Shown: positions 7,568-56,513, counted from the first letter of the stretch. The stretch: 64,000 bases of DNA from Saccharolobus islandicus REY15A (GCF_000189555.1 NC_017276.1); one strand, 5' to 3'. Made by a program: numbers and translations. The notes: generated by a model from the sequence alone, not told the origin.

Positions 7568-8899
7568 GTGATGTATAAGGTTCTGCTCATAATAATTCTA
7601 TTGTTGCCATTATCAATGCCCTTAACAATACATACCATTTCACAACCTTCTTCGCTGGCTTTTCCGTCTGGAGTAACCAGTTATCCTTTGAATACACTAA
7701 TCTATACAGATTTCGTTATGGGTAAGATCAATATTTCATATTTAAATATAGGTAGCTCATATTTACCTGGAGGAGAATATTTCACTACTGGGAATGCATC
7801 TCTTCAGTTAAATGCTATGGTATTAGGAAAATATTGGGCACAAAATGTAATCCTATTTCATCAAATATCAAATAATACCTTTTATGCCACACTAATAGTA
7901 AATCTTTGGAATCTTTCCGGTCCCTTTAGTAATACAACAGGAAATTCGTTAGTATATCAAGGCCTTGGTGTAATTTGTTATCAAGGTCCAACGTTCAAGG
8001 TAAATTTACCTCTTTCCATAAGTCTATTTATGGAAATAGTTAATTCTACATTAGACTTTGGATATAATATAAATGGAGAAAGGGGGATTTACTTCAGATA
8101 TCCCCTAATAGGCTTATTCCAGTTAGGTGGTCTTTCATTACTAGGGTTGCCAAATGATCTAGAGTTAGTTTGGGGAGGACCAGGTGGTGGAAGTGTGGTT
8201 TTTATGAACGTGAGTAGTGTAGCCAATTTGTATTATTTCAATGGCAATGGTTTAAGTATTGTACCCAACGCTTACTCTATTGGATTTGATACCGCAGAGG
8301 CGGCATTTGGGGTTAAGATATACTCCACTTTTCCTAGTGTATTCTCGCCTATGGCAATTGAGACAAGTGGGCTTAACGTTCCTTCAGTATTATGGCCAAT
8401 CCCTCCCCACGTTTTGGTTAATCAGACTAGTGATAGAATTACTGTGAAATTGTCAATAAGTAATAAGTCATTGTCTGGGCAAGCGGTTTATTTGGAAACT
8501 GGATTCCCTCCTTCAGTAGTATCTTCTACACTAACAAACTCCTCTGGAATTGCGGTATTTCCTAATAACAATTATTCGTTTTACGTAGTTTATTTTCCGG
8601 GCAACTTTACGCTATCTTCGGCATATTATTTTTCCTCACCAATCCTTAATTCGCTTTCTAGCAAGTTTCATTCATACTACCAAGATTTATTGAATTTCCT
8701 TAACTCTGCCCAAAATTCCTTTAAGAAGGGTATAAAGTCTATATTGTCAAAGCAGGAGACTTCCATAACTACTACCACGTTAACTTCCACTACTTCAAGC
8801 TCTCCCCAATTTGGGGTCAACTTGTATATTATACTTTACATCTTAGCTTTTGTAATAGGTATGGTTATTTCAGCAATATTAATAAGGTTCAAATTATAG
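7568..8899 (+). CDS. Thermopsin-family (peptidase A5) membrane-anchored protease
   Basis: Signal peptide, P.G...Y, NASLQLNA, YWAQNV, DLELVWGGPGGG and TAE motifs; Thr/Ser linker and C-terminal TM. Confidence 0.85.
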   Translation: MMYKVLLIIILLLPLSMPLTIHTISQPSSLAFPSGVTSYPLNTLIYTDFVMGKINISYLNIGSSYLPGGEYFTTGNASLQLNAMVLGKYWAQNVILFHQISNNTFYATLIVNLWNLSGPFSNTTGNSLVYQGLGVICYQGPTFKVNLPLSISLFMEIVNSTLDFGYNINGERGIYFRYPLIGLFQLGGLSLLGLPNDLELVWGGPGGGSVVFMNVSSVANLYYFNGNGLSIVPNAYSIGFDTAEAAFGVKIYSTFPSVFSPMAIETSGLNVPSVLWPIPPHVLVNQTSDRITVKLSISNKSLSGQAVYLETGFPPSVVSSTLTNSSGIAVFPNNNYSFYVVYFPGNFTLSSAYYFSSPILNSLSSKFHSYYQDLLNFLNSAQNSFKKGIKSILSKQETSITTTTLTSTTSSSPQFGVNLYIILYILAFVIGMVISAILIRFKL

Positions 8900-8923
8900 T
8901 TATATATTTGGAGGTAGTAGGAT

Positions 8924-9727
8924 TTGGCAATTAATGTAGGAGACATAGTAGGCATAGTATTTCTAATCATTATAATAATCATCTTTATTGCCATGTCATT
9001 TAGAGTAGTCAGAGAATGGGAGAGAGCCGTTGTGTTGAGATTAGGGAGATTTTTAAGAATAAAAGGCCCTGGAATCATATTCCTTATACCCTTTGTTGAT
9101 AGACCATTAATAGTAGATCTAAGAGTAAATACTGTTGAGGTTCCACCTCAAACTATCTTAACTAGAGATAACGTTACTGTAAGTGTAGACGCTGTAGTGT
9201 ACTATAAAGTGGTTGACCCACAAAAAGCAGTATTAAGTGTTTACAACTATAATGTAGCAGTACTAAATTTAGCTCAAACCTCATTAAGGGATATTGTTGG
9301 ACAAATGGAATTAGATGAGCTATTAAGTAAAAGGGAAGAAATCAATAAGAGGATACAAGAAATATTAGATGTTACAACTGAAGGGTGGGGAATTAAAGTC
9401 ACCGCTGTAACTATAAGAGATATTAGATTATCTCAAGATTTGTTATCTGCTATGGCAAAGCAAGCTGAGGCAGAGAGATTAAGAAGAGCGAAGGTAATAC
9501 TAAGTGAAGGTGAGAGACAAGCTGCAAGTATTTTAGCTGACGCATCTACTTATTACAAGGATAATCCATCAGCATTACAGTTAAGGTTTTTGGAAACATT
9601 ATCAGATATTTCACAAAGAGGAGGTTTAATAATAGTAGTCCCGGCAGGAAATGAAATATACCCTACTCTAGGTACTAGTGCTGCATTATCAACTCTCTCA
9701 AAAAAGTTACAAACTGAAACCAAATAG
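8924..9727 (+). CDS. SPFH/band-7 stomatin-like protein
   Basis: N-terminal TM, VV.RLGR...GPG..FLIPF, TxDNV.V.VDA, AQTSLR..G...LDELL, AEAERxRRA, LQLRFLETL. Confidence 0.95.
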   Translation: MAINVGDIVGIVFLIIIIIIFIAMSFRVVREWERAVVLRLGRFLRIKGPGIIFLIPFVDRPLIVDLRVNTVEVPPQTILTRDNVTVSVDAVVYYKVVDPQKAVLSVYNYNVAVLNLAQTSLRDIVGQMELDELLSKREEINKRIQEILDVTTEGWGIKVTAVTIRDIRLSQDLLSAMAKQAEAERLRRAKVILSEGERQAASILADASTYYKDNPSALQLRFLETLSDISQRGGLIIVVPAGNEIYPTLGTSAALSTLSKKLQTETK

Positions 9728-9775
9728 TCAGCTGGACTAGGAGTCTTCATCCATCATTTACGTCTTTCTCATCAT
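9728..9775 (-). ncRNA. Box C/D guide sRNA candidate overlapping the 3' end of the NurA paralogue
   Basis: C ATGATGA (9775-9769), 11-nt guide GAAAGACGTAA, D' ATGA, C' ATGAAGA, guide CTCCTAGTCCAG, D CTGA (9731-9728). Confidence 0.65.
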
Positions 9776-10849
9776 TAGTTCTGCCAGCTTATCGTTCATA
9801 TCTAAATAGTTTTCTCTAGCTAAGTTAAATAGTAATGCATATTTTTTTGCATCTTGTGAATTTATTTCCGAAAGCTCGTCAGCTAGTTTATTCAATAACG
9901 TAACTTCTCTAATACCTTGCATAGCCCATGTGTTCAAATATTTAATTGGTGTGAAGTCAGGTTCCTTTTCACTCAACATATCTATTCTGACTATTGGTGA
10001 TGTTATATTATACTGGTAATAGAGAGAGTATATTGAGAGTGAGTAGTTAAATGCCTTTTTATATTGGTTATAAGCCTTTGAGATTCCCTTTAGATCATCT
10101 AGTATTATCTGATTATTTATTAACGAATCCCAATTTATCCATCCTAGAAAGATTGGTTTATTAAACTCAGACTTTTCGAGTCTATATTTATACATAATAT
10201 TAGATATTATGTAATTCTCCCTTGCCTTAATCAGCGCCGGATAGCTATTTAAAAATTCCTTGATCAATATTCTATGGGAGAAGTTCTTTACTATTCCCAT
10301 GATTAATTTGTTCTTACTCTTTAATCTTCTGAGTACTGTAGAACGATATAGTGCTAACTTATCCAGCGATAAGATATTTTCTATCTCAACGTCCTCTTCA
10401 TAATATGTGGGAGGATCCACTATAGGTCCATCGATAAATATCACGTCACAATCCTCGCACTTCTCAATTAAACCAGTTTCTAAACTAAGCATAAATAGAA
10501 TGGATTTATTGGATATTACGTTCTTATCATAGTAATTCTCTATTATTTTGAAATCTTCAGCTATCTCAGACGGAACACTCTTTTTATCCTTCTTTTTCCC
10601 TAAGATCTTCACAGCTCTAGCTAGGATAAGAGTTACATCACTTAGCTCTATTTCATATTTACTTCCATCTACTGCACATGCTATGTGGTCAGAATCTATA
10701 ATCTCTTCAAGTATTCCTATTTTTAATTCCGAATTATTTGATGTAATATCGTCAAAAATCAAGTTAGTTGCCATGTTTATCTTTCCTCTCTCATCAACAT
10801 CCTTGGTAGCTAACTCATTTACCTTTTTGATTATCTCATTAATATTCAA
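9758..10849 (-). CDS. NurA-family nuclease paralogue
   Basis: CAVDGS and IFIDGP metal-ligand motifs, VRID, C-terminal LxKLAD helix where canonical NurA has LKAH; last gene of the herA-paralogue operon. Confidence 0.85.
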   Translation of the reverse strand: MNINEIIKKVNELATKDVDERGKINMATNLIFDDITSNNSELKIGILEEIIDSDHIACAVDGSKYEIELSDVTLILARAVKILGKKKDKKSVPSEIAEDFKIIENYYDKNVISNKSILFMLSLETGLIEKCEDCDVIFIDGPIVDPPTYYEEDVEIENILSLDKLALYRSTVLRRLKSKNKLIMGIVKNFSHRILIKEFLNSYPALIKARENYIISNIMYKYRLEKSEFNKPIFLGWINWDSLINNQIILDDLKGISKAYNQYKKAFNYSLSIYSLYYQYNITSPIVRIDMLSEKEPDFTPIKYLNTWAMQGIREVTLLNKLADELSEINSQDAKKYALLFNLARENYLDMNDKLAELMMRKT

Positions 10850-11535
10850 ACTTTCACCTTTATCGAAATATTTCTCTCTACAAGCATTTTCATAACCTTA
10901 ATAGCCTCTTCTAAATTATCTTTACTAATCTTTATTTCGCCTTTGTCTATTAGTATTATCAGTATGTTAATCTCATTCTCGTTTAGATTTAATTTTCCTA
11001 ACTCGTTAACGATAATCTCGTATAGTTCATTAAGGTGTTGTTTAGCTTGTATTTCGACTTCATTTAGCTTAGAAAGTGATTTCTCCTTAGGTATACTAAA
11101 AGTTTTTACATCTTTCTGAATTTTAAGAAAATGATACAAAATTTTCGCATACAATTTTAGTCTATCATTTATTTCCTCGATGTTCTTAATCTTATCGTCT
11201 ATTATCTTATTCAGATCTTGTTCTACATCCTTTTCTAAGCTGTCAATTTTTCCTTTTATCTTCTCTACGTATCTAATTATTTCTTCTGCGGAATTGAGCT
11301 TGCCTAGCCTCTCTATATCTGCTTTAATTTCCTCAAGATTATCTTCATATTTATTTAATTCGTTTATCTTCTTCTCTAAGCTCCTTAATTTCTTTAGAGA
11401 CTCCTTCAAGCTTTGTTTAGATACCTCTAATTCCTCTATCATCTCAGTAATTTTTCTATCTTCTTCTCTAAGTTTTTCTACGTCCAAATTCTGCTTATAT
11501 TGGGTCAATTTTTCTATAAAGTCAGCCAAATCCAT
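10846..11535 (-). CDS. Coiled-coil protein with small C-terminal (winged-helix-like) domain
   Basis: K/E/L/I-rich heptads over about 180 aa; LNENEINILIILIDKGEIKI C-terminus; overlaps both neighbours. Confidence 0.8.
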   Translation of the reverse strand: MDLADFIEKLTQYKQNLDVEKLREEDRKITEMIEELEVSKQSLKESLKKLRSLEKKINELNKYEDNLEEIKADIERLGKLNSAEEIIRYVEKIKGKIDSLEKDVEQDLNKIIDDKIKNIEEINDRLKLYAKILYHFLKIQKDVKTFSIPKEKSLSKLNEVEIQAKQHLNELYEIIVNELGKLNLNENEINILIILIDKGEIKISKDNLEEAIKVMKMLVERNISIKVKV

Positions 11536-14500
11536 GTTCTTCTAGAACCTCCTTTATTTCTTGAATCAATTGCATAATCTTTTGCGTGTTTCTCTCCACG
11601 TTCTCCCTCAACTTAGGTAATTCTGGACTTATCTTTTCTAACTCATTTACAATCGTCTCAATATTATTTAATTGAATACCGACCTTACTTAATGATGTAA
11701 TTTCATCTACTATTGTTCCTTTTAACTCTTCACCAACGATTGCTATGCCATTTAGTGTCTCTTTCAGTAATTTGAATAATATGAAATAAAGATTTGAGTT
11801 GTCCTCAACATGAATTGTAGCAAGTAAGTAATCGAGGTATCTTTTGAAAGACTCCGTTTCTCCCCTTTCATTTATCTCCTGAATTCTTTTCGCCAACTTA
11901 TCCATGTGTATTTTGAAATTGTCTTTAAGTTCTCGAACTATCTCACGTACTTTCTCTATTTCCTCTATTTTCTCGTTTATCTTAACATATCTCTTAGCCT
12001 TTTCCACAACTTCTAATTTCTTAGAGATTTCCTCCACGATCTTGTCCGTTTCAATTACTGATTTCTCGGTCTCTCTTAATAATTCCAGATAAATATTCGA
12101 TAGGTAGAGGTAATCATAACATAGCCTTATATCCTTATTTTCAGTGCAAGATTTCTCATATGTTTCTATGACTTCTCTCATTTCTTCAAGACTCCTTACT
12201 GCAGCTCCCCTCTTTTTAGCAGTTATGAAGTATCCATAAGCTGAGTATGGATTATCTAGTTTTTCCTTTATTTTTCGTATCTGGTCATTTATTTTCATAT
12301 AAATTGAATCTTTATTTAAATGTTTGGCGACTTCACCACTAACTATTGAAGAGTAAACTAGGAAATCTAAAGTGGGATTTTGTCCAATCTTTTTATCAGG
12401 ATTAAAAATTTGGTAAGCGAAGGTTAAAGGATTATTTTTATTATCCTTTCTTCTTGTATCTTGTGGGTTTACATAGTACATGATAGAATTAAATATAACA
12501 TCCTCCGCTTCTTGTTTGTATTTTTGTCTAATAAGTCCCGCAAATAGCTTAGAAAATGAGGACAACGAGTCTCCAGCTAAGTCTTCGAAATCTATGTAAT
12601 TAGCTCTTATCTTTATTATATAATTATTATAGAAGTAAGTAATAACGTCTTCAATAAATGTGTTTGATGTTTCTATATCCTCTAAATGGAATTGCTTACT
12701 TCCATACATTCTGAATTTCTCATTAATGATGTCATTTACTTTGTCGAACACTTCATCAGCATTTGCCATCTTAATTGAAGGGTAAAATATTATCCAATTG
12801 AACGATTGTATTAATCTCTTATTTTTAGGTATTGGGAGTTGTTTCAAATTAAGGTTATCTCTTATTTTTAGCAGTAGAGAGGATATCGAATTTTTCAAGT
12901 CACCTAGTCTTAGTTCTATGGAATCCAGTCTAATTCTACTTTGCCCATAGATCTTAGAGAATAGTAGATATAATAACTGTCTTTTCTTTGGTGTGGTGAT
13001 TTTTAGTTCGATCAAAGGTATTGATAGTTCGTCTAAAGTTTTCGACAATTCTTCCTTTCCTATTTGAGGCTCTATTAGAATAAGTCCGTGAATTATATCA
13101 TCGCTTTCTTTAATCTCTTTTATTAGACTCTTAATTTCATCCTCGTTAGACGGTTTTGCTAAAATAATTGTAATTTTGTCATTTCTCTCGACGACTTTTA
13201 AAAACCTTATGTAGTCTCTGGCTCTGTTAACACTATCTATTTTTATTCCTAGAACCTCCATAAAATATTCTACTGATTCAAGTTCCTTCTCTCTATCTGT
13301 AATATATGTATTTACGAACTGTAAAGCTTTATCTCGTATTTCCCTAGACTTGAACTCTACTACTAGTCCTCCTATATTCGTATTCGCTACGCTCTCAAAG
13401 AAGTTCCAAGATAATGCATAGGCTTCAGTTTTACTGAATAGCGTTAGTTTTTTTATATTCTCCTTTAATTTGCTTGTATCTATACTTTCGTACACTACAC
13501 TTTCTATATTATCAGATATAAATACGTGAAAGTCATCTTGATAGTATGTTAAAAGGAAGTCCTCTACGTATTCTTGTCCTTTAGGGAACATCTCAATCCA
13601 TTTTAGGTATGGTAGCAGTACTCCCTTCACTACATGACCTTCTAATTGTTTTATGATTAGTTTTTCGTCAGTGAATATTCTACTCATTAGCACTCTATAT
13701 AACTTACTTGATTCTTGAGAGTCCAATTCGTTCTCCATTTTCGTCAATGTATCTAGCTTGATGGTCTCCCCTTCTGAATTTAGGCTAATTCCTTTCTCTG
13801 ATCTAGCTAGTTCGTTGAAAATTCTATCTATATTAGGAAGATTATCGCACAATATATCGTTAAAGAACCTTACGTATTTTCTTCTTTCTTGGTCTATTAC
13901 CCAGTACGGCAAATCCATGTATTGGAGTATTTTGAAGTCCTTTACGTTAGCCATATTTAGCATGCATTTTAACATCAATAGAAACTCTAATTTAGATGGA
14001 TTTTCTATACTAACTTTCCTTATTCTTTCTAAGAGTGAAGGGTATGTCTCTGAAAATAGGTTATAAATTAATCCCCCAGTTCCAAATATTTTAGAATATG
14101 CGCTAGGAGTCATGGAAAGATATACTATTGAATTTCCGGTTGAGTTGGCTAATTCCTTTACCTTACTCCAAAAATCCTTTATCTCGCTTTGATATTGTGC
14201 AAAGTAATCTACAGAACTCTCTACCTCATCAATAAGATATACGTTATTTCTGAACGTTAATAAGTCTTCAGTTTTACTTAAAAGTTCTACAAAAGGTACT
14301 TTTATTACGCTAATATTTTTGCTTTTGGCGTATTCCTCAATAATGTCAAGGAATGTGCTTTTTCCTTGACCCCAATCGGCTACAAGGGATATTATTTCTG
14401 GGGACTGTTTAGTATTAGATATCCTGTCTAGCTCATCCTTAACCTGCTTGAAAAATCTTAGTCTATTAATGTATAATGGGTTCTCACTAATGCAAGAGAA

Positions 14501-14560
14501 AATTTGATAGATGTAAGACGAGTCAGAGGCAGTCTCACTTATTCTCTTGTAACAACTCAC
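11522..14560 (-). CDS. Large (1012 aa) P-loop ATPase with C-terminal coiled coil
   Basis: Walker A ADWGQGKST, Walker B VYLIDEVE, LLERI arginine-finger-like motif; helical/coiled-coil C-terminus; family not identified. Confidence 0.85.
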   Translation of the reverse strand: MSCYKRISETASDSSYIYQIFSCISENPLYINRLRFFKQVKDELDRISNTKQSPEIISLVADWGQGKSTFLDIIEEYAKSKNISVIKVPFVELLSKTEDLLTFRNNVYLIDEVESSVDYFAQYQSEIKDFWSKVKELANSTGNSIVYLSMTPSAYSKIFGTGGLIYNLFSETYPSLLERIRKVSIENPSKLEFLLMLKCMLNMANVKDFKILQYMDLPYWVIDQERRKYVRFFNDILCDNLPNIDRIFNELARSEKGISLNSEGETIKLDTLTKMENELDSQESSKLYRVLMSRIFTDEKLIIKQLEGHVVKGVLLPYLKWIEMFPKGQEYVEDFLLTYYQDDFHVFISDNIESVVYESIDTSKLKENIKKLTLFSKTEAYALSWNFFESVANTNIGGLVVEFKSREIRDKALQFVNTYITDREKELESVEYFMEVLGIKIDSVNRARDYIRFLKVVERNDKITIILAKPSNEDEIKSLIKEIKESDDIIHGLILIEPQIGKEELSKTLDELSIPLIELKITTPKKRQLLYLLFSKIYGQSRIRLDSIELRLGDLKNSISSLLLKIRDNLNLKQLPIPKNKRLIQSFNWIIFYPSIKMANADEVFDKVNDIINEKFRMYGSKQFHLEDIETSNTFIEDVITYFYNNYIIKIRANYIDFEDLAGDSLSSFSKLFAGLIRQKYKQEAEDVIFNSIMYYVNPQDTRRKDNKNNPLTFAYQIFNPDKKIGQNPTLDFLVYSSIVSGEVAKHLNKDSIYMKINDQIRKIKEKLDNPYSAYGYFITAKKRGAAVRSLEEMREVIETYEKSCTENKDIRLCYDYLYLSNIYLELLRETEKSVIETDKIVEEISKKLEVVEKAKRYVKINEKIEEIEKVREIVRELKDNFKIHMDKLAKRIQEINERGETESFKRYLDYLLATIHVEDNSNLYFILFKLLKETLNGIAIVGEELKGTIVDEITSLSKVGIQLNNIETIVNELEKISPELPKLRENVERNTQKIMQLIQEIKEVLEEHGFG

Positions 14561-14564
14561 ATTT

Positions 14565-16178
14565 TCACCCTTCGCTTAAAATTAAATCAATTCTTTCCAC
14601 GTTTCCAGCGTATGATCCCAACCTAGCATCCCACGGTATTCTTACCAATGCTGGACTTTTCATTATTGACATAAGCCCACTTACTATTACGTGTCCAGTC
14701 TCTAATGATGTCAAATTCCTAGTCAACGATTCTGGTAAACCTCCAGAAGCAGACATCACATACCTTACATCTTCGTGATATATTCTATGAAAGAAGAAGG
14801 TGTTAATCATCGACAATACGTATTTATCTATAAATGCAGGTCTTTGACTTACGAGAATTAAAGAAGCCCCAAATTTTCTTCCTTGGGTTGCCAATGTTAC
14901 CAATGCGTCTTTTGTCAGGTTGGCGTTTACTGGATAATCAACAGAAGGTATGTAGTTTTGTGCCTCTTCTATTACAAATCCCAAGAACCTTTGATTGCCG
15001 TTATATTTGGATTTTGTGAGATAATTGAAGATCAATCTAGTTATGTAACTCACGATAAGCTGTTTTGTAAGGACGTCTATACCTGGTGAACCCTCAGCAG
15101 AGAAGTCTATTATTCCTAAACCTCTATTCCTCCAAATCACTTCTAGTGTATTTTCAGTTAAAGATGCAGAAGAGTTGACCAGTTGTAGTCTGCTAATCAC
15201 CTTGTTTTTGAATATTTCTAGTGCACTCGCAATTGCTCTAGCCGTGCTTGTTGTTATTCCTATATCTTTATTTTGAGCCATAGTAAGGATCTCATTTCTT
15301 AGGTTCTCAATTCCTATTGCAGTTCCTAGAAGGGTATTGTACTCCTTACTATCGTGATTTGCTAGCACTTGCTCTAGGAAATTTAGTTGCAAGGTGTTAT
15401 AGGAAGCTTCTCCGTATTTTAGAGACATAATGAATTCTGATAATTCTCTAGGAGTGAATATGGACAAATCTATTGTGAGTTTAACGTCATTTTGTTCCTT
15501 AGGATCCTTTAGTATATACCTTTTTATCCAGCCTCTTCCCCTAGATACGATGTCTAGATTTGTCGAAGCTAAATCTATGTAGTCTCCATTCGCATCAATT
15601 ACAATCATCGGTAAGGCTGTGATCTTATCTCCTATTTTTATGTTGGATAGAAGCTTGATTAAATATCTCATATTATAGCTTTTTCCACTCCCTGTCTCCC
15701 CAAAAACTCCTACATGCATCGTTATCGCATTAAGGTCTAATAATAATGGTATTTCAGAACCAGCTAAAACACCGTACTCAATTAATCCTTTCTTGTTTTT
15801 TATACCATAAAACGAAAGTAGGTCTTTTTCACTCTTTATTTCTGGTAGTCTTCTTACGAAAGAACCCGGTTTAGGAGTAGTGCTATGGTCATATTTTTTT
15901 ATTAAGTGTAAAGTAGTCTTTATTATTGTATTCATATCTAGAATCTCGTATATCGATGGTTCTTTTAGTATTGACTTAGCTATATCCCCCCTTTCGTCAA
16001 AAAACTCGTTCAGAAATTCATAATTCTCAACTCTGACTAGCGAAAGTTTCTCAGAATCATCAATTAATAACAATTGCCCTATGTTTATTTCTTCGTCAGC
16101 TCTAATTAGCCCTTGCAATTCATTTGCTTCGCTTTTCTGCAGTACTATTCCTATGATCTCTCCCTTTTCCATCAACAT
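14565..16178 (-). CDS. HerA/FtsK-family ATPase (HerA paralogue)
   Basis: N-terminal HAS-barrel-like region, HVGVFGETGSGKSY, VIDANGDY, VIEEAQNY, QGRKFG, SQRP, L..L..G motifs. Confidence 0.93.
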   Translation of the reverse strand: MLMEKGEIIGIVLQKSEANELQGLIRADEEINIGQLLLIDDSEKLSLVRVENYEFLNEFFDERGDIAKSILKEPSIYEILDMNTIIKTTLHLIKKYDHSTTPKPGSFVRRLPEIKSEKDLLSFYGIKNKKGLIEYGVLAGSEIPLLLDLNAITMHVGVFGETGSGKSYNMRYLIKLLSNIKIGDKITALPMIVIDANGDYIDLASTNLDIVSRGRGWIKRYILKDPKEQNDVKLTIDLSIFTPRELSEFIMSLKYGEASYNTLQLNFLEQVLANHDSKEYNTLLGTAIGIENLRNEILTMAQNKDIGITTSTARAIASALEIFKNKVISRLQLVNSSASLTENTLEVIWRNRGLGIIDFSAEGSPGIDVLTKQLIVSYITRLIFNYLTKSKYNGNQRFLGFVIEEAQNYIPSVDYPVNANLTKDALVTLATQGRKFGASLILVSQRPAFIDKYVLSMINTFFFHRIYHEDVRYVMSASGGLPESLTRNLTSLETGHVIVSGLMSIMKSPALVRIPWDARLGSYAGNVERIDLILSEG

Positions 16179-16222
16179 TTAACATTATTTAAGAACGTTT
16201 TTAAACGATTAAGCTACTGGAA

Positions 16223-16789
16223 TTATGATGAAATGGTTGTTATCACATTAGCTATGGTTTTAAAGGCTAATCTACCATATGGGTAAATTGTTATTTTTAA
16301 ATTTGAGATTTCAGCTGCCCTTTTGACTATTTCGTAGTGATGCCTAGGTAGTATACCTATTAACCTATTGTGTAACGTACTTACTTTTATGAGGGGTTTC
16401 GTTAATAACATTATAAACTCTTCTTTCTCCTCTTTACTCATAAGTCTCGGCGGGTAATCATAATTATTAAAAGGATAGCATTCCTCTAATTCTTTAGGCA
16501 CTAAAAGCATTGGTTCCGATACTGAATAGACTTGCACTTTTTCTTCTAAATTATATTTGTTTAATGTAGAATAGGCTATTTTGTGGGTTGGCGATAATGA
16601 ATAAGGCTTAACTACTGTACAAGGCAATAACAATCCAATTTCCTTGTCCGAATTCCAATTTTCCAGGAAATAGTGATGCCATCTCATTACTACCGGGTGT
16701 TTGAATAAATCATCTGTATTATCTTTTTTAGATATTCTAGTAAAATCAGGCTTTAGATATTCATATAGTCGCTCGCATGCAGAGCTCAT
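16223..16789 (-). CDS. DUF5591-domain protein (archaeosine synthase ArcS-like domain)
   Basis: LLLPCTVVKPYSLSPTH, VSEP..LVP.ELE..YP..NYDYPP pattern characteristic of DUF5591. Confidence 0.8.
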   Translation of the reverse strand: MSSACERLYEYLKPDFTRISKKDNTDDLFKHPVVMRWHHYFLENWNSDKEIGLLLPCTVVKPYSLSPTHKIAYSTLNKYNLEEKVQVYSVSEPMLLVPKELEECYPFNNYDYPPRLMSKEEKEEFIMLLTKPLIKVSTLHNRLIGILPRHHYEIVKRAAEISNLKITIYPYGRLAFKTIANVITTISS

Positions 16790-17645
16790 TTACCTCTTCC
16801 TCTATCTCATCTTCTGGGAAACTATCTAGCTTTTTAGAATACTCTATTAATGGATTGTTAATTTCATATTCTGAATTTAAGAGTACCCAAGCATTAATTA
16901 GACTTCTATCTACCCAATTATCAAGTCTGATTGGAAACATATAGTTTGTCCTATCTAAGAATGATAATAAAGTCTCTAATTCCTCTTCACTAGCTCTCCT
17001 AGTGCCCCAAACTATTTTTCTTTCGCCAACGTATCTTTCTCCTTTGCCTGGTATAATTACCATGCCATGTATTCCCTTGATTCTATAGGTTGAGGTATCT
17101 ACACTATTAGCGTTAAAGTAGACTTTTCTCATGAATGGTGATCCAGCTCCCAATACGTGAATTTTTCCTTTCCATAATTTTCTCACTAGATGATATATTG
17201 TAACTGCGAGTTTTTTGTTTCCACTTTTATTGAGGGTAGGAGGTATAATTCCACCGAATGCCACTAGATCAGTATATTGGGAGTAGAAGTCTATGGACTT
17301 CTTTATTGATTCTACATCATAAGCGTGTATAACTGGTACTATTTTCTTATCAAAAACCGCGTACAGATACTCGAAGTATTTGTAATTTAATTCTGAAGGT
17401 TTATGACAAGGGTTTGACGGTATATCGAGGCTCATGTATTGTGTAGCATCTAAAATTTTATATTTCTCAACAACTTTTTCTATTTCAACCTTTATCCCTT
17501 TTACCATTATTTGATATCCTCCAGAGTCTACCCATGTCTCATTTTCCCAGGATAGATTATTCCAGTTTAATTGGTTAACCATTAATGGTTGTTTAAACAT
17601 CCAAACTGGGATTTTCAAGTCAGGTATACCTAGTATTATCTTCAT
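16761..17645 (-). CDS. tRNA-guanine transglycosylase (TGT)/DpdA-like base-exchange enzyme
   Basis: VDSGGYQ (D40), SLDIP (D74), PVIH, AFGG, IHVLGAG and SVDTS motifs of the TGT barrel; no CxCxxC Zn site and no PUA domain. Confidence 0.85.
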   Translation of the reverse strand: MKIILGIPDLKIPVWMFKQPLMVNQLNWNNLSWENETWVDSGGYQIMVKGIKVEIEKVVEKYKILDATQYMSLDIPSNPCHKPSELNYKYFEYLYAVFDKKIVPVIHAYDVESIKKSIDFYSQYTDLVAFGGIIPPTLNKSGNKKLAVTIYHLVRKLWKGKIHVLGAGSPFMRKVYFNANSVDTSTYRIKGIHGMVIIPGKGERYVGERKIVWGTRRASEEELETLLSFLDRTNYMFPIRLDNWVDRSLINAWVLLNSEYEINNPLIEYSKKLDSFPEDEIEEEVNELCMRATI

Positions 17646-50939: not shown

Positions 50940-51758
50940 GTGCAAAGAACTTTTATATTGACGTTGTTTACGTCCCTTAGTTTTATTATAGCTTACTATA
51001 TTTCCCTTAGTCCATTAATTTTAGCAGAATTTTCTCACGCCTTAATTGACTTCTTAACAATTACATTTTCAATTATCGCCCTAAAATTTATAGGGGAGAA
51101 TGAAGTAAGTGAGGGGAGGCTTTCTTATGGATTACATAGACTGGAAGTTATTGTTGCTATGATTAATATCTTTGCTATTATCCTCCTTTCACTTATTGTA
51201 GCATATACCTCCATAACGTCATTGTTAAAAGAGACTACTAACAGTTCTTTTGCTTTGATTATCTCGTCAGCCCTAGCATCAATTCTAACTTTCTTTGCAT
51301 CTCCTAAAGAAAAGGACAACTTGGGTAAGAGGGGATTATATGTGCATATAATATCAGACTTTCTAGGATATATAATCGGCTTTGTTATAGGTATTCTTAT
51401 CCTTATTTCCGGAATACATGAATTGGATCCCGTAGGAGCAATTATACTTGTAATACTAAATTTTGCACTTGCAATCCCATTATTAAAGGAATCTTTTTTA
51501 ATATTTATGGAAGGTTCTCCAGTGAAAATTGATAATATCATGGGAGAACTTACAAAAATTTCTCCAGATATTCATCATTTACATGTGTGGTCAATTTGTG
51601 ATCATGTAAAGGTAGCAACACTTCACGTTAAAGCATCTCCAAATCTGACTATAGCTGAGGCGGATAAGATAAGGGGTTCAATCTGTAGTCTGCTTAGAGA
51701 AAAATATGGCATTTCTCATGTAACGGTTCAGTTTGAGACGACGAATGATGACGATTAA
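50940..51758 (+). CDS. Cation diffusion facilitator, ZitB/CzcD-type
   Basis: AE..H.L.D, SYG.HR.EV, H...D.LG, HHLHVWSI, H.TVQ.E. Confidence 0.92.
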   Translation: MQRTFILTLFTSLSFIIAYYISLSPLILAEFSHALIDFLTITFSIIALKFIGENEVSEGRLSYGLHRLEVIVAMINIFAIILLSLIVAYTSITSLLKETTNSSFALIISSALASILTFFASPKEKDNLGKRGLYVHIISDFLGYIIGFVIGILILISGIHELDPVGAIILVILNFALAIPLLKESFLIFMEGSPVKIDNIMGELTKISPDIHHLHVWSICDHVKVATLHVKASPNLTIAEADKIRGSICSLLREKYGISHVTVQFETTNDDD

Positions 51759-52774
51759 TAAAACTGGCTGGGCCACCACTCAATATCTTTGTGAAGTTTA
51801 CTTCCCATTAACTTTATTATTTTTTCCCTATCCATCCTTGAAAATCTAACGTCTATATGAGCTTTTAAGAGTGGAAATGGATATCCCTTAATGCTTACTC
51901 CACTCAAATGATCCATTATCTCCTTTACTATTTTCTCATCCACTCTTCCAACCATATCTATTCTAACAACCCTCTTACCATTATCCAATCTAGTATAGAA
52001 AGTTGTATATTCCATTTTTCTTAATATCTCAAGCTCGGGTATCTCAGAAATTTTTCTGATGTCTATATTTTTGATTATAAGTTTTGAAAATCCTCTTTTT
52101 TCAGTAAACAGTTCAAAAACAGTTATGTCGGGATAGTCTGTACCAAATAAATCTCTCCCCCTACTGGTTTTAGATATCCATAAAACCTTGCCATCATATT
52201 GCTCTATTATTCTACTAACGAGAAATTGATTTAGTAGCATTAGCAAATCCCTCATTTTCCTTTCATCTTTTATGCTAATAATACTATTTATGTCGACATT
52301 CTTAACTAGCTTTAGCTCTTCATCAGAGATTTGTTGAATATCGACTTTATTACCAATCTTTTTGTTTAAACTTCCATCCATAAGAATGTAATCTCCTTTA
52401 CTACCATCCCTTAAAGCTAGTGATAATTCCAATGCCTCCATTAATAGTGATATTCTTTCTTGTGCATCGTTCCCTGGCTTGAATATACCTATTTGACCAT
52501 CCTCGCTCAATGTCTTTACTCCTTTATTATCTCCGATTACGGATTCAGCTCCTACAGCATAAACTATCCCTATTCTCATAGGTTTACTGAAAGAACCACC
52601 ATCAATAGCTACAAATTTGCATATTTCGCTTAACTCATTATCTCTAGTGTATTCAGTCCAAAACTCATTAACCTTTTCTTGTATTTCTTGCCTAAGGTAG
52701 CTAGCAATATTGTAAATCTGATTTTTTATCTCGTTGTGACTTTCCGCTAACTTATCATATATTTTTCTTATCAA
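51755..52774 (-). CDS. nurA: 5'-3' nuclease NurA
   Basis: AIDGG, LMDGS, YPFPLLKAH; last gene of herA-mre11-rad50-nurA. Confidence 0.95.
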   Translation of the reverse strand: MIRKIYDKLAESHNEIKNQIYNIASYLRQEIQEKVNEFWTEYTRDNELSEICKFVAIDGGSFSKPMRIGIVYAVGAESVIGDNKGVKTLSEDGQIGIFKPGNDAQERISLLMEALELSLALRDGSKGDYILMDGSLNKKIGNKVDIQQISDEELKLVKNVDINSIISIKDERKMRDLLMLLNQFLVSRIIEQYDGKVLWISKTSRGRDLFGTDYPDITVFELFTEKRGFSKLIIKNIDIRKISEIPELEILRKMEYTTFYTRLDNGKRVVRIDMVGRVDEKIVKEIMDHLSGVSIKGYPFPLLKAHIDVRFSRMDREKIIKLMGSKLHKDIEWWPSQFY

Positions 52775-55365
52775 GTCTCCTCCCTCACAAAACTTTTATT
52801 TCCTCTCTTTTCAACACGAATAACATAATCAGCTGCCTGGACTACCTCCTCGTCATGTGTTACCACTAATATCTGAGGTACACTTTCCTTTGCTGCCCTA
52901 ATTATCTCTATTAAGTACGCTTTTCTTTGATCATCTAAATGAATTGTTGGCTCGTCAAGAATGAAGAAGTTAGTATTACTCATCAGTGCCTTAGCTATTG
53001 CTAACCTTAAAGCTATAGATAAGGCAATTCTCTCACCTCCACTAAGCGATACTATGGGCAAAGTATCGCCGTTATTAGTGTATATTACTATATTCCCACC
53101 ACTGCCCTTTCCTCTACTAGTTTTTGGCATTATCTCCATTTCTACGTTTTTAATAGATAGATCAAATTTCGATATTATATCATTTAGATTATTTTCAATT
53201 AATTGTTTTGTTGCCATGATTATATAACTCTGTAATTTTCGTTCTCCTAATGCATCTCTAATTTTCTCCAGCTTATTAATACCATTGATTATCTTTTCTT
53301 TATCTTTTAGTTGCAATTCATAATTCTTAATTCGATTACTTATTTCCTCTATGTCTTTACCTAAACTATCCAATTCGCCCTCCACTCTACTTTTTCTGTT
53401 TTCCTTCTCCTTAAGACTGGCATTATGGACATCTAAACTCGTTTTAAGTTCATTATATTTATTTTCATCAAACTGTATGATATTTAATTTTTCCCTTAGT
53501 TTCTTAACATCTTCTTGTAGTAGCTCAACTTGTCCTATATAGTCTTCTAGTACTCCTCTTTTCTTCTTCATTTCATCCAAGATTTTTTTCTTCCTCTCTA
53601 AATCTGAAATTTTATTCTCCAGCTCTTTACGGTCTAACCCTTGTAATTCGGTTTCTAGAGCCCTCATTTCTTTTTCGATTTCTACTTTTTTCTTCTTCAT
53701 TTCATCTAACCTATTTTTTCTTCTTTCAAGTTCCTTCTCGTCATACTTAAATAGTCTCATAAACTCTTCATAATACTGTTTTAGGTCCTTTATTTCTACA
53801 TTTATTTTCTTAATTTCCTCCTCTATATCCTTTAAAGCTTCAATCCTATTATGAAGATTCTCTATTTCCTCGTTTAACTTTCTAAGTTGTTTTATTACAT
53901 TATCGTAATTTGCCTTATTATTTGAGAGTTTTCTATATTCTTTTTCAATTTTATTTAATTCATCAGTGGTTTTCTTTAATTCTTCTTCCAGTTCATTCTT
54001 ATCTAATTCTAATCGTGAAATGTAACTTTTTGCTTCTTCTACTATTTTTTGTTTGTGTTCCTCATCTAGGGGTCTTCCACATACCGGACAAGTTTCCCCC
54101 TTAACTTGACTAAGATTATTTATTATCTCATTTTTCTCAGATATTAGGCTTTCAACTTTACCTAATTGAGCTCGAAGATCAAGTTGTCTTTTTCTTTTCT
54201 CTTCCATAATTTGTTCAAGATTACTAATTCTATCTATATCTTTAGAAAACTCACTTGCGTCTTTCTCTAAACGTTCTTTTAAATTTAGTTTGGAGTCTAA
54301 ATTGGATTTCGATTTGAGATATTCTTCATGTTTTGGCTGTAATTCTTCTAGTTTTCTCTCCAATTCCTTGTATCTTAGATAATGTGGCTCAAGTTCTTTC
54401 TTTCTTTTAATAGCTTTTTCATATTCCTCAATTTCCTTTTCTAAATTAAGTATATTATTGGATATCTCTATATAACTTCTCGATAAAACTTCATATTTTT
54501 CAAATTTTAATCTAAAATTCTTTAAATTGTCAAGTTCGTTTACCTCCTTTTCAAGCTTATCCATGTTTTCCGTTTGTCTTCTTAGTTCTTCTATACTCTT
54601 GTTTAATTCATTTAATTTAGTTTCTTTTACCTTTAAGATAGTGGTCAACTCTAAGTACTGATTTCTTTTCTTCTCATAATCTTCGAATTGTTTCTTTAAC
54701 TCAGTTATTTGATTTTCCAAGTTCTTTATCTCATCCTCCAGTTTTTTCCTATCTTTTTCTAACTCCAACACTCTATTTCTCTTCTCCTCCAAGTTCTTCT
54801 TAGAATCATTATAGTCTTGTTCTATCCTGTCTAACTCTCTTAACTTGTTTTCCAAATTCTTCTTAAATTCCACTATTGGACCTCTGCTATCAATAAGCTT
54901 CTCGATTGATTCCAACTTTAGAATTTTCCCCATAATGTCTTGTAAATTCTCCAAAATTTTATCCAATTCTCCTTGTCTAACTATTATTGTTGATAGGGCA
55001 ATATCTTTATCAATACCCAGAATTTTCTCTATTTCATTAGAGACTACCGTTGCACTACGTGCAACTGGTATTTGATTCCGTATTAACCTATCTTCTGTAG
55101 TGCTTCTTATATCCCTTATTATTTCTATTTTATCTTTTTCATTAGAAAGATGTAAGGTAACGCTCGCCTTATTTGAGCCTTTTCTTATTAAGTTGTCGTT
55201 ATTTCCTCTACTATGGGTTCTAAACAAACTGAATACTATGCCATCTATTATAGAACTCTTACCTGCTCCATTTTGTCCCACTATTACATTTATTTCGCCT
55301 AGAAAGTGTATTTCACTGTGTTCATGACTTAAAAAATTAGTCAAAGTAATTTTGTCAATTCTCAT
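52771..55365 (-). CDS. rad50: DNA double-strand break repair ATPase Rad50
   Basis: GQNGAGKSS, CPVCGR zinc hook, LSGGE, ILDEPT, THD. Confidence 0.97.
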   Translation of the reverse strand: MRIDKITLTNFLSHEHSEIHFLGEINVIVGQNGAGKSSIIDGIVFSLFRTHSRGNNDNLIRKGSNKASVTLHLSNEKDKIEIIRDIRSTTEDRLIRNQIPVARSATVVSNEIEKILGIDKDIALSTIIVRQGELDKILENLQDIMGKILKLESIEKLIDSRGPIVEFKKNLENKLRELDRIEQDYNDSKKNLEEKRNRVLELEKDRKKLEDEIKNLENQITELKKQFEDYEKKRNQYLELTTILKVKETKLNELNKSIEELRRQTENMDKLEKEVNELDNLKNFRLKFEKYEVLSRSYIEISNNILNLEKEIEEYEKAIKRKKELEPHYLRYKELERKLEELQPKHEEYLKSKSNLDSKLNLKERLEKDASEFSKDIDRISNLEQIMEEKRKRQLDLRAQLGKVESLISEKNEIINNLSQVKGETCPVCGRPLDEEHKQKIVEEAKSYISRLELDKNELEEELKKTTDELNKIEKEYRKLSNNKANYDNVIKQLRKLNEEIENLHNRIEALKDIEEEIKKINVEIKDLKQYYEEFMRLFKYDEKELERRKNRLDEMKKKKVEIEKEMRALETELQGLDRKELENKISDLERKKKILDEMKKKRGVLEDYIGQVELLQEDVKKLREKLNIIQFDENKYNELKTSLDVHNASLKEKENRKSRVEGELDSLGKDIEEISNRIKNYELQLKDKEKIINGINKLEKIRDALGERKLQSYIIMATKQLIENNLNDIISKFDLSIKNVEMEIMPKTSRGKGSGGNIVIYTNNGDTLPIVSLSGGERIALSIALRLAIAKALMSNTNFFILDEPTIHLDDQRKAYLIEIIRAAKESVPQILVVTHDEEVVQAADYVIRVEKRGNKSFVREET

Positions 55366-56513
55366 AAGTTAACACCTGTTAGTCTTTTTAATATCTCATT
55401 TACTATATCTTCAGAATCAACGTTCTTTATCATTTGTAAAATTAAATTAGCCTCGTCCTCGTTGAACTTCTCGTATTTAGTAAGGTATTCGATTATTATC
55501 TTATCTAATGCCCTATCTTGCGGCAAGGTATATGTTAAGTTGTCTACACTTTGAATAGTTTCATCTTTATATATTCTATAATAAAGTGCAATATCATTTA
55601 AAGGAAGTAACTCTCTGTAAAGTAGATCCTTTCTCATTCTTTCACCTTCTACGATAATGTGTAATATTGGCTTATTGTTTTCACCTTTATTATTTTTTAA
55701 TAAATCACTTTTTATTTTCGATATGTCATTCTTCAGATTTTTTGTATTTATGGTTACAACTTTTTGTGGCCTTACTGTAGTATTTATCGTGGTAAGTGTA
55801 GGTAAGTCCTTTGAAAAGTCTATTAGGTATGCTCCTTTTCCAAATTTTTCATACCCTTCTATTTCCTCTTCTCTCATAATATCTGGAGAACCAGCTATAG
55901 CGATTATTGAACCGTCATCTTGAATAAGTCTCCACCTAGTATGCAAATGTCCTAAAGCATAATACCCAAAACCTTTAGGTAAACTTCCTAATTCCATTTG
56001 CCACGAACCATCATACGGCAATATCTGTTTTACACCTTGATGTAGTAATAGGATACTTCTACTTGACTTTGGTTTTAAAGAGGATAACGTGCTAACCAAT
56101 ACGTTTTTTGAAACTGTGGGAATATGGGGGATTCCGTATATTTCTATTTCTTTTATAATATATGGCTTATCATAATTCAAAATTTTGATTAAATCCAATT
56201 CAGTTAGAATATTATGAGGAATGATGTAACCTTTCCTCTTTGGAGTGTCGTGGTCCCCTGGTATTGAGAGAAATGGTATATTCGCATCTTTTAACTTTTT
56301 TAGGATTTTAACAGCTATTACTAATGCATTTGTAGTAGGATTCGAAACATCGAAAAGGTCTCCAGAATGTATTACTGCGTCAACACGTTCTTTAATAGCA
56401 ATGTCAATTAGTTGTGAGAAAACATCGTAAATATCCTTTTCCCTTTCTGCTAGGGAGTACTGTCTTTTTCCTAAATGAGTATCAGAAATATGTAGAATTT
56501 GTACCATCATCAA
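55362..56513 (-). CDS. mre11: DNA double-strand break repair nuclease Mre11
   Basis: HISDTHLG, SGDLFD, GDHD, LHQ, LGHLH, GSP; start probably 56510/56507. Confidence 0.97.
   Translation of the reverse strand: MMMVQILHISDTHLGKRQYSLAEREKDIYDVFSQLIDIAIKERVDAVIHSGDLFDVSNPTTNALVIAVKILKKLKDANIPFLSIPGDHDTPKRKGYIIPHNILTELDLIKILNYDKPYIIKEIEIYGIPHIPTVSKNVLVSTLSSLKPKSSRSILLLHQGVKQILPYDGSWQMELGSLPKGFGYYALGHLHTRWRLIQDDGSIIAIAGSPDIMREEEIEGYEKFGKGAYLIDFSKDLPTLTTINTTVRPQKVVTINTKNLKNDISKIKSDLLKNNKGENNKPILHIIVEGERMRKDLLYRELLPLNDIALYYRIYKDETIQSVDNLTYTLPQDRALDKIIIEYLTKYEKFNEDEANLILQMIKNVDSEDIVNEILKRLTGVNL

Follow-up and report, generated by a model that had tools for sequence, protein, structure and literature searches.

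A second HerA–NurA operon with a large AAA+ ATPase and a coiled-coil protein in Saccharolobus islandicus: candidate control subunits of a putative deazaguanine-linked restriction-modification-like locus

Deazaguanine-linked restriction-modification and HerA-based defence appear to be the known kinds of system closest to a six-gene locus of Saccharolobus islandicus REY15A (GCF_000189555.1, NC_017276.1), in which NurA, a large ATPase family and DUF5591 partners would be the new elements. The locus lies on the minus strand of a 64,000-nucleotide stretch of this genome (the window, from whose first letter all positions are counted) and consists of a DpdA-like and an ArcS2-like gene followed by herA2, a gene for a 1012-residue ATPase, a gene for a 229-residue coiled-coil protein, and nurA2. 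We put at roughly 0.55 the probability that the ATPase and the coiled-coil protein are specificity or control subunits of a restriction-modification-like defence locus formed by all six genes. This Dpd-like reading is favoured because of the gene content, the operon structure, the intact catalytic motifs, the co-occurrence of the genes, their recurrence in five gene orders, the viral homologues and the pattern of gene essentiality.

In the bacterial Dpd system (dpdA-K, 7-deazaguanine restriction-modification of Salmonella Montevideo), as in the locus described here, DpdA, a member of the tRNA-guanine transglycosylase (TGT) family, is clustered with ATPases, helicases and nucleases to give a predicted modification module and a predicted multi-protein restriction module, and phages and viruses respond with a DpdA of their own. 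The window locus differs in having neither DpdB (ParB-like) nor DpdC (DUF328), in place of which stands the ArcS core (DUF5591); DpdB and DpdC domains were absent among the called genes of all loci examined. HerA, NurA, the large ATPase and the coiled-coil protein are, as far as compared, not homologous to DpdD-K, the hosts are mostly archaeal, and the TGT has lost its Zn motif. A HerA/FtsK translocase, an AAA+ ATPase of ORC/Cdc6/STAND grade, a fast-evolving putative DNA binder and a nuclease are shared with the 'HerA/FtsK capture' and BREX-Related Capture (BRC) systems that comparative genomics has predicted (PMC10853773, PMC12839542), and BRC has also recruited a TGT. Those systems use nucleases of the restriction-endonuclease fold or PglZ together with DUF6079, DUF4007 or GNAT components, whereas the present locus has NurA and DUF5591, and its large ATPase belongs to another family (arCOG07313 and remote relatives); NurA goes unmentioned in PMC10853773 and PMC12839542. 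The bacterial anti-phage systems SIR2-HerA and DUF4297-HerA likewise couple a HerA hexamer to a defence effector enzyme, but they are two-gene systems with an NADase or a Cap4-like nuclease as effector, no modification module and no large sensor ATPase. Against the NCBIfam families for these two systems, HerA2 scores 57-61 bits, compared with cut-offs of 800-850.

The BREX proteins BrxC and PglY resemble the ATPase in their large size, in the AAA+/ORC-like P-loop at the N-terminus, in the long region that makes up the C-terminal part, and in belonging to modification-linked defence. The analogy is a weak one. Among the ATPase relatives, 2 of 32 weakly match BrxC_BrxD (E=0.0017); the middle and C-terminal regions of the ATPase have no detectable similarity to BrxC/PglY, and the locus has neither PglZ nor PglX, genes for which are absent from the loci examined. 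Membership of BrxC/PglY was rejected, as the window protein has no match to BrxC_BrxD (PF10923), DUF499 or DUF6079 and PADLOC returned nothing. The initial annotation had likened the ATPase to the large AAA+ components of BREX and Dpd. The likeness fits the AAA+/STAND-like head and the few BrxC_BrxD matches but stops short of BrxC/PglY membership; on the Dpd side it is strengthened by the upstream DpdA-like/ArcS2-like pair, which had been overlooked and which recurs with remote systems. The six genes and the putative promoter are as follows.

9758-10849, minus strand: nurA2, 363 aa (open reading frame call, PF09376).
10846-11535, minus strand: coiled-coil gene, 229 aa, orthologue of M164_0015, arCOG08073 (open reading frame call).
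11522-14560, minus strand: ATPase gene, 1012 aa, GTG start (open reading frame call).
14565-16178, minus strand: herA2, 537 aa (open reading frame call, PF01935).
16198-16205, minus strand: TATA-box-like TTTAAAAA, 20-27 nt 5' of the herA2 ATG (sequence reading).
16223-16789, minus strand: arcS2-like gene, 188 aa, orthologue of M164_0018 (PF17884, DUF5591).
16761-17645, minus strand: dpdA-like gene (orf294), 294 aa, orthologue of M164_0019, arCOG00996 (profile match to TGT).

With a 4-nt gap between herA2 and the ATPase gene, a 14-nt overlap between the ATPase and coiled-coil genes and a 4-nt overlap between the latter and nurA2, these four genes form a tightly coupled minus-strand operon. Directly upstream of herA2 lie the dpdA-like and arcS2-like genes, co-oriented and overlapping by 29 nt. 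The element TTTAAAAA is probably a separate promoter yielding a leaderless herA2 operon transcript, to judge from general knowledge of Sulfolobus promoters. Both the four-gene order and the canonical repair operon elsewhere in the window had been recognised in the initial annotation and are confirmed by open reading frame calls, Pfam and NCBIfam; it had left out the two upstream genes, which bear most of the functional information.

On its own the orf294 protein has no Pfam match, and its family returned nothing in PDB sequence searches. The family profile aligns with a TGT of PF01702 in hhalign (Prob 99.4, E=1.8e-21), and, with that protein as a bridge, its invariant D40 (VDSGGYQ) and D183 (SVDTS) map to D95 and D249, the catalytic aspartates of P. 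horikoshii ArcTGT. The protein is predicted to be a TGT-fold base transglycosylase with both catalytic aspartates and, being clustered with DNA-processing genes, qualifies as a DpdA in the sense of the Dpd system. It has neither the C-terminal tRNA-binding domains nor the Zn motif; the CxCxxC...H zinc site is lost in the Sulfolobales and Conexivisphaera DpdA-like proteins and, judged by identity, in their STSV relatives (alignment A3), and is kept in ArcTGT and in the TGT of an Aenigmatarchaeota locus (L027). The arcS2-like protein matches PF17884 (DUF5591; E=6e-18), the standalone ArcS C1 core, and contains as LPCTVVKPYSLSPTH the complete ArcS motif PC-x3-KPY-x2-S-x2-H (sequence reading), defined in PMC10516641. 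The tRNA-acting form of ArcS, with Nt TGT-like, C1, C2 and PUA domains, was considered and rejected, only the C1 core being present in the 188-aa protein, where no PUA domain was detected. The PUA domain of ArcS binds RNA, and the standalone core is the 'ArcS2' of viruses that make dG+ in DNA (PMC10516641).

The pair has close viral relatives. STSV1/2/4 DpdA shares 67% identity with the DpdA-like protein and rudivirus homologues share 37-40%, the arcS2-like protein is 60-63% identical to STSV1/2/4 ArcS2 with the same gene order, and an orf294 homologue occurs in 35 Sulfolobales virus records, rudiviruses included. DpdA2 and ArcS2 of Vibrio phage nt-1 make dG+ in DNA, and Sulfolobus virus STSV2 encodes DpdA and ArcS2 and holds dCDG in its DNA (PMC10516641). 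The window pair matches this viral "DpdA + ArcS2" architecture. Methanobacterium virus PhiF1 (MK994522.1; Methanothermobacter host) encodes a more distant homologue of DUF5591, at 28.5% identity (E=1e-8) and under the label archaeosine tRNA-guanine transglycosylase, and deazaguanine genes may serve as counter-defence in euryarchaeal viruses too.

Published transposon-insertion sequencing (Tn-seq) of S. islandicus M.16.4 (PMC6249222) separates the pair from the operon. M164_0019 (essentiality index, EI, -8.5; 1 insertion) and M164_0018 (EI -5.7; 0 insertions) are essential, as are the canonical mre11, rad50 and nurA (EI about -9), and the second operon is non-essential throughout: herA2 (EI +1.57; 24 insertions), the ATPase gene (EI -0.08; 17), the coiled-coil gene (EI -0.40; 9) and nurA2 (EI +0.40; 19). 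Such a combination of indispensable modifier and dispensable nuclease is the classic hallmark of restriction-modification pairs; polar effects do not explain the essentiality of the pair, because the genes downstream are dispensable. The same contrast between a dispensable second operon and an essential canonical one bears out the earlier suggestion of a role distinct from double-strand-break repair. As for tRNA, G+ has been reported in that of S. acidocaldarius (PMC4770233), and ArcS is reportedly absent from most Crenarchaeota. The modifier pair is not the general Sulfolobales route to tRNA archaeosine, because S. acidocaldarius has G+ and no orthologue of the pair in the published orthologue table.

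A modification-dependent, type IV-like restriction would turn the role of the pair around, the host TGT-like enzyme recognising or excising viral 7-deazaguanines and the damaged DNA passing to HerA2-NurA2. Sulfolobales viruses do carry 7-deazaguanines in their DNA (PMC10516641), and defence by DNA glycosylases against modified bases is documented (bioRxiv 10.1101/2025.10.29.685425). With 67% identity to a viral writer and the same gene pairing, however, the same activity is most likely, and excision would give no reason for the essentiality of the host genes; we see very little chance of this scheme being correct.

Overexpression of Csa3a, the CRISPR-adaptation activator, raised nurA2 (SiRe_0014) by 1.7 log2 and SiRe_0016, the ATPase gene, by 1.09 log2 in one strain, and this transcriptome table was the only hit in the searchable literature on the locus tags and arCOGs of the operon. 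A 2026 NurA review does not mention the operon, and none of the searchable papers describes this six-gene system.

The Dpd-like reading draws further on the distribution of the genes. The window's proteins fall into 90%-identity clusters made up mostly of S. islandicus, S. shibatae and S. solfataricus members. A word-indexed search with the ATPase returned 32 clusters, all from Sulfolobales, and an exhaustive hidden Markov model (HMM) search of 1.84 billion representatives gave 16 matches at E<=0.001; all placeable HMM matches are from Sulfolobales or Conexivisphaera, and none was found on IMG/VR viral contigs. The 22 ATPase loci compared span a G+C content of 29-56% and come from Saccharolobus, the Sulfolobus sp. 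A20 and S. tengchongensis types, Acidianus, Sulfuracidifex, Sulfurisphaera, Ca. Aramenus, Stygiolobus and Conexivisphaera. Wherever the contig includes the flank in question, herA2 lies upstream and nurA2 downstream of the ATPase gene (both in 19/22 loci; the other three contigs break off before reaching herA2 or within the ATPase gene). This arrangement is not due to chance, and the linkage in every locus with flanks, together with an apparent gene fusion in Conexivisphaera, supports the initial annotation in taking the ATPase and the coiled-coil protein for dedicated partners of HerA2-NurA2.

The DpdA-like/DUF5591 pair adjoins the operon in half of these loci (11/22). Simple inherited synteny is disfavoured, because the gene order of the pair is reversed in Conexivisphaera. 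Cellular orf294 orthologues, sharing at least 43% identity, come from the genera that carry the ATPase, and locus tags indicate adjacency in S. tengchongensis (V6M85_05415/V6M85_05430) and A. sulfidivorans (DFR86_02195/DFR86_02180). The published orthologue table gives no S. acidocaldarius counterpart for any of the six genes and no M. sedula counterpart for five of them; for herA2 it lists Msed_0760, which is probably the canonical HerA. Since the flanking genes M164_0011-0013 have counterparts in both species, the six genes largely behave as one unit of insertion or deletion. Identity to the Acidianus orthologues falls from 64% for HerA2 and 55% for the DpdA-like protein to 42% for the ATPase, 40% for NurA2 and 31% for the coiled-coil protein, and such fast divergence of the last three is typical of the sensor and effector parts of a defence system. 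Beside nurA2, at 7568-9727 of the window, are genes for a protease of the thermopsin type (443 aa) and a stomatin homologue of the Band 7/SPFH family (267 aa). This block adjoins the locus only in Saccharolobus-type contigs (L001, L014, L015), and the published table lists S. acidocaldarius orthologues for it and not for the six locus genes.

Beyond Sulfolobales, nine genomic contexts of the HerA2 clade were compared. Five contain a TGT and a giant ATPase, four of these with DUF5591 as well; two are plain herA-nurA pairs beside cdvB/vps4, and two have other arrangements. Four of the remote loci are arranged as follows.

L012: TGT, nurA, herA, 1407-aa ATPase; beside McrBC-like genes.
L027 (Aenigmatarchaeota metagenome-assembled genome): TGT, DUF5591, nurA, divergent from herA, 952-aa protein.
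L028: nurA, herA, 1412-aa protein, DUF5591, TGT, QueC; near HicA, HD and PD-(D/E)xK genes.
L030: 375-aa protein, herA, 1427-aa protein, DUF5591, TGT.

The set of TGT, NurA, HerA and large ATPase, usually with DUF5591 and once with QueC, thus occurs in five gene orders, often within defence islands. The L012 ATPase aligns with residues 377-871 of the window ATPase (hhalign Prob 94.4, E=8.9e-8), other remote giant ATPases align at E=8.5e-4 and 6e-3, and the giant ATPases have in common the motifs (D/E)WGxGK(S/T), (L/F)IDE(V/F)E, TPxAYxK, KFRxYG(S/T)K and TKKR, from which they are judged to be remote homologues of the window protein. In a Conexivisphaera sp. metagenome-assembled genome (GCA_049967735.1; L013:1-6205) the locus abuts genes for a DUF499 ATPase (895 aa), a 128-aa protein, a DUF1156 N6-methylase (860 aa) and a ResIII/SNF2 helicase, in what looks like a BREX-related or DISARM-like system; because these genes directly adjoin the locus, the two share a defence island. 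L012:1-4402 contains sporulation-type genes (Spore_YtfJ, DUF2953) and a McrBC-like pair (AAA_5 plus DUF2357/PDDEXK_7). Its HerA cluster is named after 'Methanothermobacter sp. MT-2', yet the contig may come from a Firmicute, in which case the system would extend to bacteria.

The QueC gene beside TGT and DUF5591 in L028 raises the alternative of a protein-directed deazaguanine chemistry, in which the TGT-like and ArcS2-like proteins and, elsewhere, QueC would attach a 7-deazaguanine moiety to one of the system's proteins, perhaps the ATPase or its coiled-coil partner, as a means of priming or regulating it. In type IV CBASS and in Qat systems (the latter described in PMC13376578), QueC and TGT-like proteins have been proposed to act in a comparable way, and there are defence systems whose QueC-like components play no part in marking DNA. 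The closest relatives of the TGT-like protein are nevertheless viral DpdA proteins tied to modified viral DNA, and this scheme would leave unexplained why the modifier is essential and its nuclease neighbour dispensable, so that we regard modification of a protein as very improbable.

For the ATPase, an AlphaFold model (pLDDT 85.8) and sequence motifs delimit the following regions.

13841-14560, minus strand: residues 1-240, AAA+ module then helical lid (Foldseek, Pfam, motifs).
14354-14371, minus strand: Walker A, residues 64-69.
14219-14236, minus strand: Walker B, residues 109-114.
12191-13840, minus strand: residues 241-790, family-specific alpha/beta and helical middle (AlphaFold model).
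11525-12190, minus strand: residues 791-1012, long-helix, coiled-coil-like C-terminal region (DSSP on the model).

A single N-terminal domain contains Walker A (W63-G64-Q-G66-K67-S-T) and, 45 residues away, Walker B (L109-I-D111-E112-V-E114). Both motifs are invariant among 32 homologues (W63, G64, G66, K67, D111, E112 and E114), as is the S149/T151 strand. In Foldseek searches, for which the full-length model was used, the first ~250 residues matched Rix7, ClpC, RFC, DnaA, Hda and ORC in the PDB (E=6e-5 to 3e-3, prob ~1.0), and a viral structure library returned AAA+ proteins only. Across the 32 family members Pfam reports nSTAND_NTPase5 (10/32), AAA_22 (8/32), KAP (5/32) and BrxC_BrxD (2/32), all sub-threshold and restricted to the P-loop. 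The head is accordingly assigned to the AAA+ superfamily, at ORC/RFC/STAND grade. For residues ~241-790 no relative was found in the PDB by sequence, and there was no non-AAA+ protein among the top 50 Foldseek matches; the region contains the conserved motifs KFR(M/I)(Y/F)GSKQFHLEDIE and YFITAKKR. Towards the C-terminus the model has long helices (791-808, 811-859, 866-898 and 958-1008), and a PDB sequence search with this region matched coiled-coil design proteins only. The window protein has no NCBIfam match and no PADLOC model.

The initial annotation had outlined this protein as an N-terminal Walker A/B ATPase without an ABC signature, followed by a long unannotated middle and a C-terminal coiled coil. 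Each part of this outline holds, given the motif spacing, the absence of an SMC_N match and the AAA+ Foldseek matches for the first, the ~770 residues past the AAA+ domain that match no known structure for the second, and the helices spanning residues 791-1008 for the third. An ABC, SMC or Rad50 architecture is excluded because the two Walker motifs stand so close together in a single domain; the lack of an SMC_N or ABC_tran match and the AAA+ fold also rule out membership of these families, although the REY15A orthologue SiRe_0016 is annotated "SMC-like". KAP NTPases carry transmembrane helices inserted in the P-loop domain. Membership of this family (PF07693) was rejected too: the score of 22.4 bits exceeds the cut-off of 20 but covers residues 47-106 and profile positions 12-72 of 293 only, and in the model the stretch joining the two Walker motifs is free of inserted hydrophobic helices. 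Public labels for the ATPase are inconsistent ('gas vesicle protein', 'SMC-like', 'KAP NTPase'), and its annotated lengths of 913 aa in L.D.8.5 and 907 aa in Sulfolobus sp. A20 suggest mis-called starts.

The 229-aa partner is all helical in its AlphaFold model (pLDDT 87.9), in keeping with the coiled coil noted in the initial annotation; Foldseek matched it to generic helical bundles only, with nothing below E=0.6. No other gene of the locus evolves as fast, orthologues sharing 18-46% identity; the C-terminal tail at residues ~180-229 (nt 10849-10998) is conserved and reads L-x2-L-x-D-K-G-E-V-x-I ... E-K-G-I-x-I-x-V-K. The winged helix-turn-helix (wHTH) proposed for this tail is possible: residues 180-224 give sub-threshold profile matches to Lrs14 (E=0.008), HTH_7 (0.039) and TrmB (0.062), and the model has two helices and no strands there, with no Foldseek match. 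PADLOC reported only the coiled-coil segments of LmuB and JetC, and JGI records label the protein 'oligoendopeptidase F'. Conexivisphaera has no separate coiled-coil gene. Its ATPase is 1460 aa long and, after a Ser/Thr/Pro-rich linker, ends in a ~295-residue helical module that closes with the same tail motif. The 1460-aa protein is probably an ATPase-coiled-coil fusion and, if so, the best in-silico sign that the two proteins act as one unit. The C-termini of the remote 1400-aa ATPases gave no hhalign match to the coiled-coil family.

An ORC/STAND-like ATPase with a fast-evolving partner would also fit a stand-alone 'HerA/FtsK capture' defence without a self-mark, in which the two proteins find the invader, HerA2 feeds NurA2, and the modifier pair acts on tRNA and is linked to the operon by accident. 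Comparative genomics has described HerA/FtsK proteins accompanied by Orc/Cdc6-type AAA+ ATPases, rapidly evolving wHTH proteins and nucleases as a recurrent anti-invader theme (PMC10853773), and the pair is indeed unlinked from the operon in several Sulfolobales genera. Linkage by accident would, however, have had to come about again and again, in varied gene orders and with various members of the TGT family, the pair without a PUA domain has the architecture that modifies DNA in viruses, and S. acidocaldarius tRNA contains G+ even though the published table lists no orthologue of the pair for that species. Capture without a mark is on these grounds distinctly unlikely.

The proposed effector of the Dpd-like system consists of HerA2 and NurA2. 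The herA2 product matches the HerA central domain (PF01935, E=1e-36) and PADLOC HerA models (down to E=1e-28) and contains a Walker A motif (G160-S167, GETGSGKS), a Walker B motif (E404/E405, VIEE) and an arginine finger (R446, SQRP); it is predicted to be a HerA/FtsK-type hexameric DNA translocase with intact motifs. NurA2 matches PF09376 (E=2.6e-16) with catalytic residues D61, E124 and D140, and D61, G62, E124, D140 and G141 are invariant in a 13-sequence alignment. In motif III, Asp324 replaces the histidine, a change from LAH to LAD confined to the Sulfolobales and Conexivisphaera clade; remote TGT-linked NurAs retain the histidine. NurA2 has no NCBIfam match and no PADLOC model. Domains, motifs and the shared operon place the two proteins, by prediction, in the HerA-NurA group.

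The canonical herA-mre11-rad50-nurA operon lies at 51755-58012 on the minus strand and scores at or near equivalog level in NCBIfam (HerA_Thermprot 885 bits, Mre11_Sulfo 540, Rad50_Sulf 765, NurA_Sulf 456). Like the second operon, it encodes members of the HerA and NurA families with intact motifs and has herA first and nurA last of four genes; it differs in that Mre11 and Rad50 are unrelated to the ATPase and the coiled-coil protein, and in being essential. HerA2 shares 25% identity with HerA1 but 36-40% with a widespread HerA clade of its own, represented in Pyrodictiaceae, Desulfurococcales, Aenigmatarchaeota and other groups, and NurA2 gives no significant BLAST alignment with NurA1 but does align with the NurAs of the HerA2 clade. 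These identity levels rule out a recent duplication of the canonical operon. The initial annotation had described the second operon as the canonical one with its middle module swapped inside the same outer frame, an idea we abandon: the frame is coincidental, because identities are low and remote relatives use orders such as nurA-herA-ATPase. Pyrolobus and other Pyrodictiaceae (L011:7001-14873, L032:7001-14694) have a herA-nurA pair of the HerA2 clade with neither ATPase nor TGT, beside the cell-division ESCRT genes cdvB and vps4 and with a second NurA-domain gene ~5 kb away; such pairs may be the housekeeping ancestor of the defence-type pair. A further type of 'middle module' may be present in L031:7001-15710, where herA and nurA are followed by an AAA_21/AAA_15 ATPase, a 331-aa protein and a protein of >1700 aa, within a Mrr_cat and PLDc_2 island and with no TGT within 7 kb.

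This kinship with core-genome proteins invites an explanation in terms of housekeeping or specialised repair: the host would have another machine for end resection or fork processing, with the ATPase/coiled-coil pair in place of Mre11-Rad50 as lesion sensor, and the TGT-like neighbours would be unrelated tRNA enzymes. The fixed chromosomal position and apparently vertical inheritance across a G+C content of 29-50% in Sulfolobales would suit such a function, as would the core-genome context of the closely related Pyrodictiaceae pairs and the NCBI label of NurA2, 'DNA double-strand break repair nuclease'. The operon is nevertheless dispensable where the canonical one is essential, S. acidocaldarius has no listed orthologue and M. 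sedula none apart from Msed_0760 for herA2, and the ATPase, the coiled-coil protein and NurA2 evolve fast. TGT, DUF5591 and QueC moreover recur with the system in five gene orders, in distant lineages and in defence islands, and the modifier genes are carried by viruses. Taking both sides together, we consider a repair function unlikely.

The restriction-modification-like model that we prefer can be set out in four steps. The DpdA-like transglycosylase and the ArcS2-like amidotransferase core would replace guanines of the host DNA with a 7-deazaguanine derivative, as a self mark. The AAA+ ATPase, joined to the coiled-coil protein by the helical regions, would bind DNA and spend ATP to detect unmarked or foreign molecules. 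The ATPase/coiled-coil unit would then recruit or license a HerA2 hexamer and a NurA2 dimer to thread and degrade the DNA, activities that are known for canonical HerA-NurA. STSV1/2/4 and rudiviruses, finally, would evade the system with their own copies of the modification genes. Host DNA modification, the source of the base, the target of the ATPase and all protein-protein contacts are inferred components of this scheme.

Several points weigh against the model. Nobody has reported 7-deazaguanine in Sulfolobales chromosomal DNA, no preQ0-synthesis genes occur within the Sulfolobales loci, and S. tengchongensis is reported to have no preQ0 pathway (PMC10516641). The locus occupies a fixed chromosomal position in Saccharolobus and Acidianus, not an obviously variable island, and Sulfurisphaera, Aramenus and Stygiolobus have the modifier pair away from the operon. 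Shuttle vectors grown in E. coli can transform S. islandicus, so any restriction is not absolute. The essentiality of the pair could be tRNA-related instead. The evidence for the Conexivisphaera fusion is statistically weak taken alone (E=0.014-0.046), and the ATPase, the coiled-coil protein and NurA2 are all without a model in the PADLOC v2 library.

In its widest form the proposal is more tentative, and we hold it at somewhat less than even odds: a cellular DpdA/ArcS2 pair would write a 7-deazaguanine self-mark on the chromosomes of Sulfolobales, of scattered other archaea and possibly of bacteria, and unmarked DNA would be destroyed by HerA-NurA under the guidance of a giant AAA+ ATPase of a new family, together with its coiled-coil adaptor. 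The locus sits in a genetically tractable model archaeon and is hence directly testable. If the proposal is true, HerA-NurA would for the first time be the basis of a restriction system, and archaea would gain their first deazaguanine restriction-modification system, with a new effector architecture in which a HerA-NurA shredder is placed under the control of a giant AAA+ ATPase. The essentiality of the two TGT-like genes in S. islandicus would represent protection from the cell's own nuclease, and the 'tRNA-guanine transglycosylase' genes of rudiviruses and bicaudaviruses would be explained as counter-defence that mimics the host mark. The second HerA-NurA operon, the two essential TGT-like genes and the viral TGT/DpdA genes would then belong to one host-virus arms race, and 7-deazaguanine marking of DNA would extend from bacteria and viruses to archaeal chromosomes.

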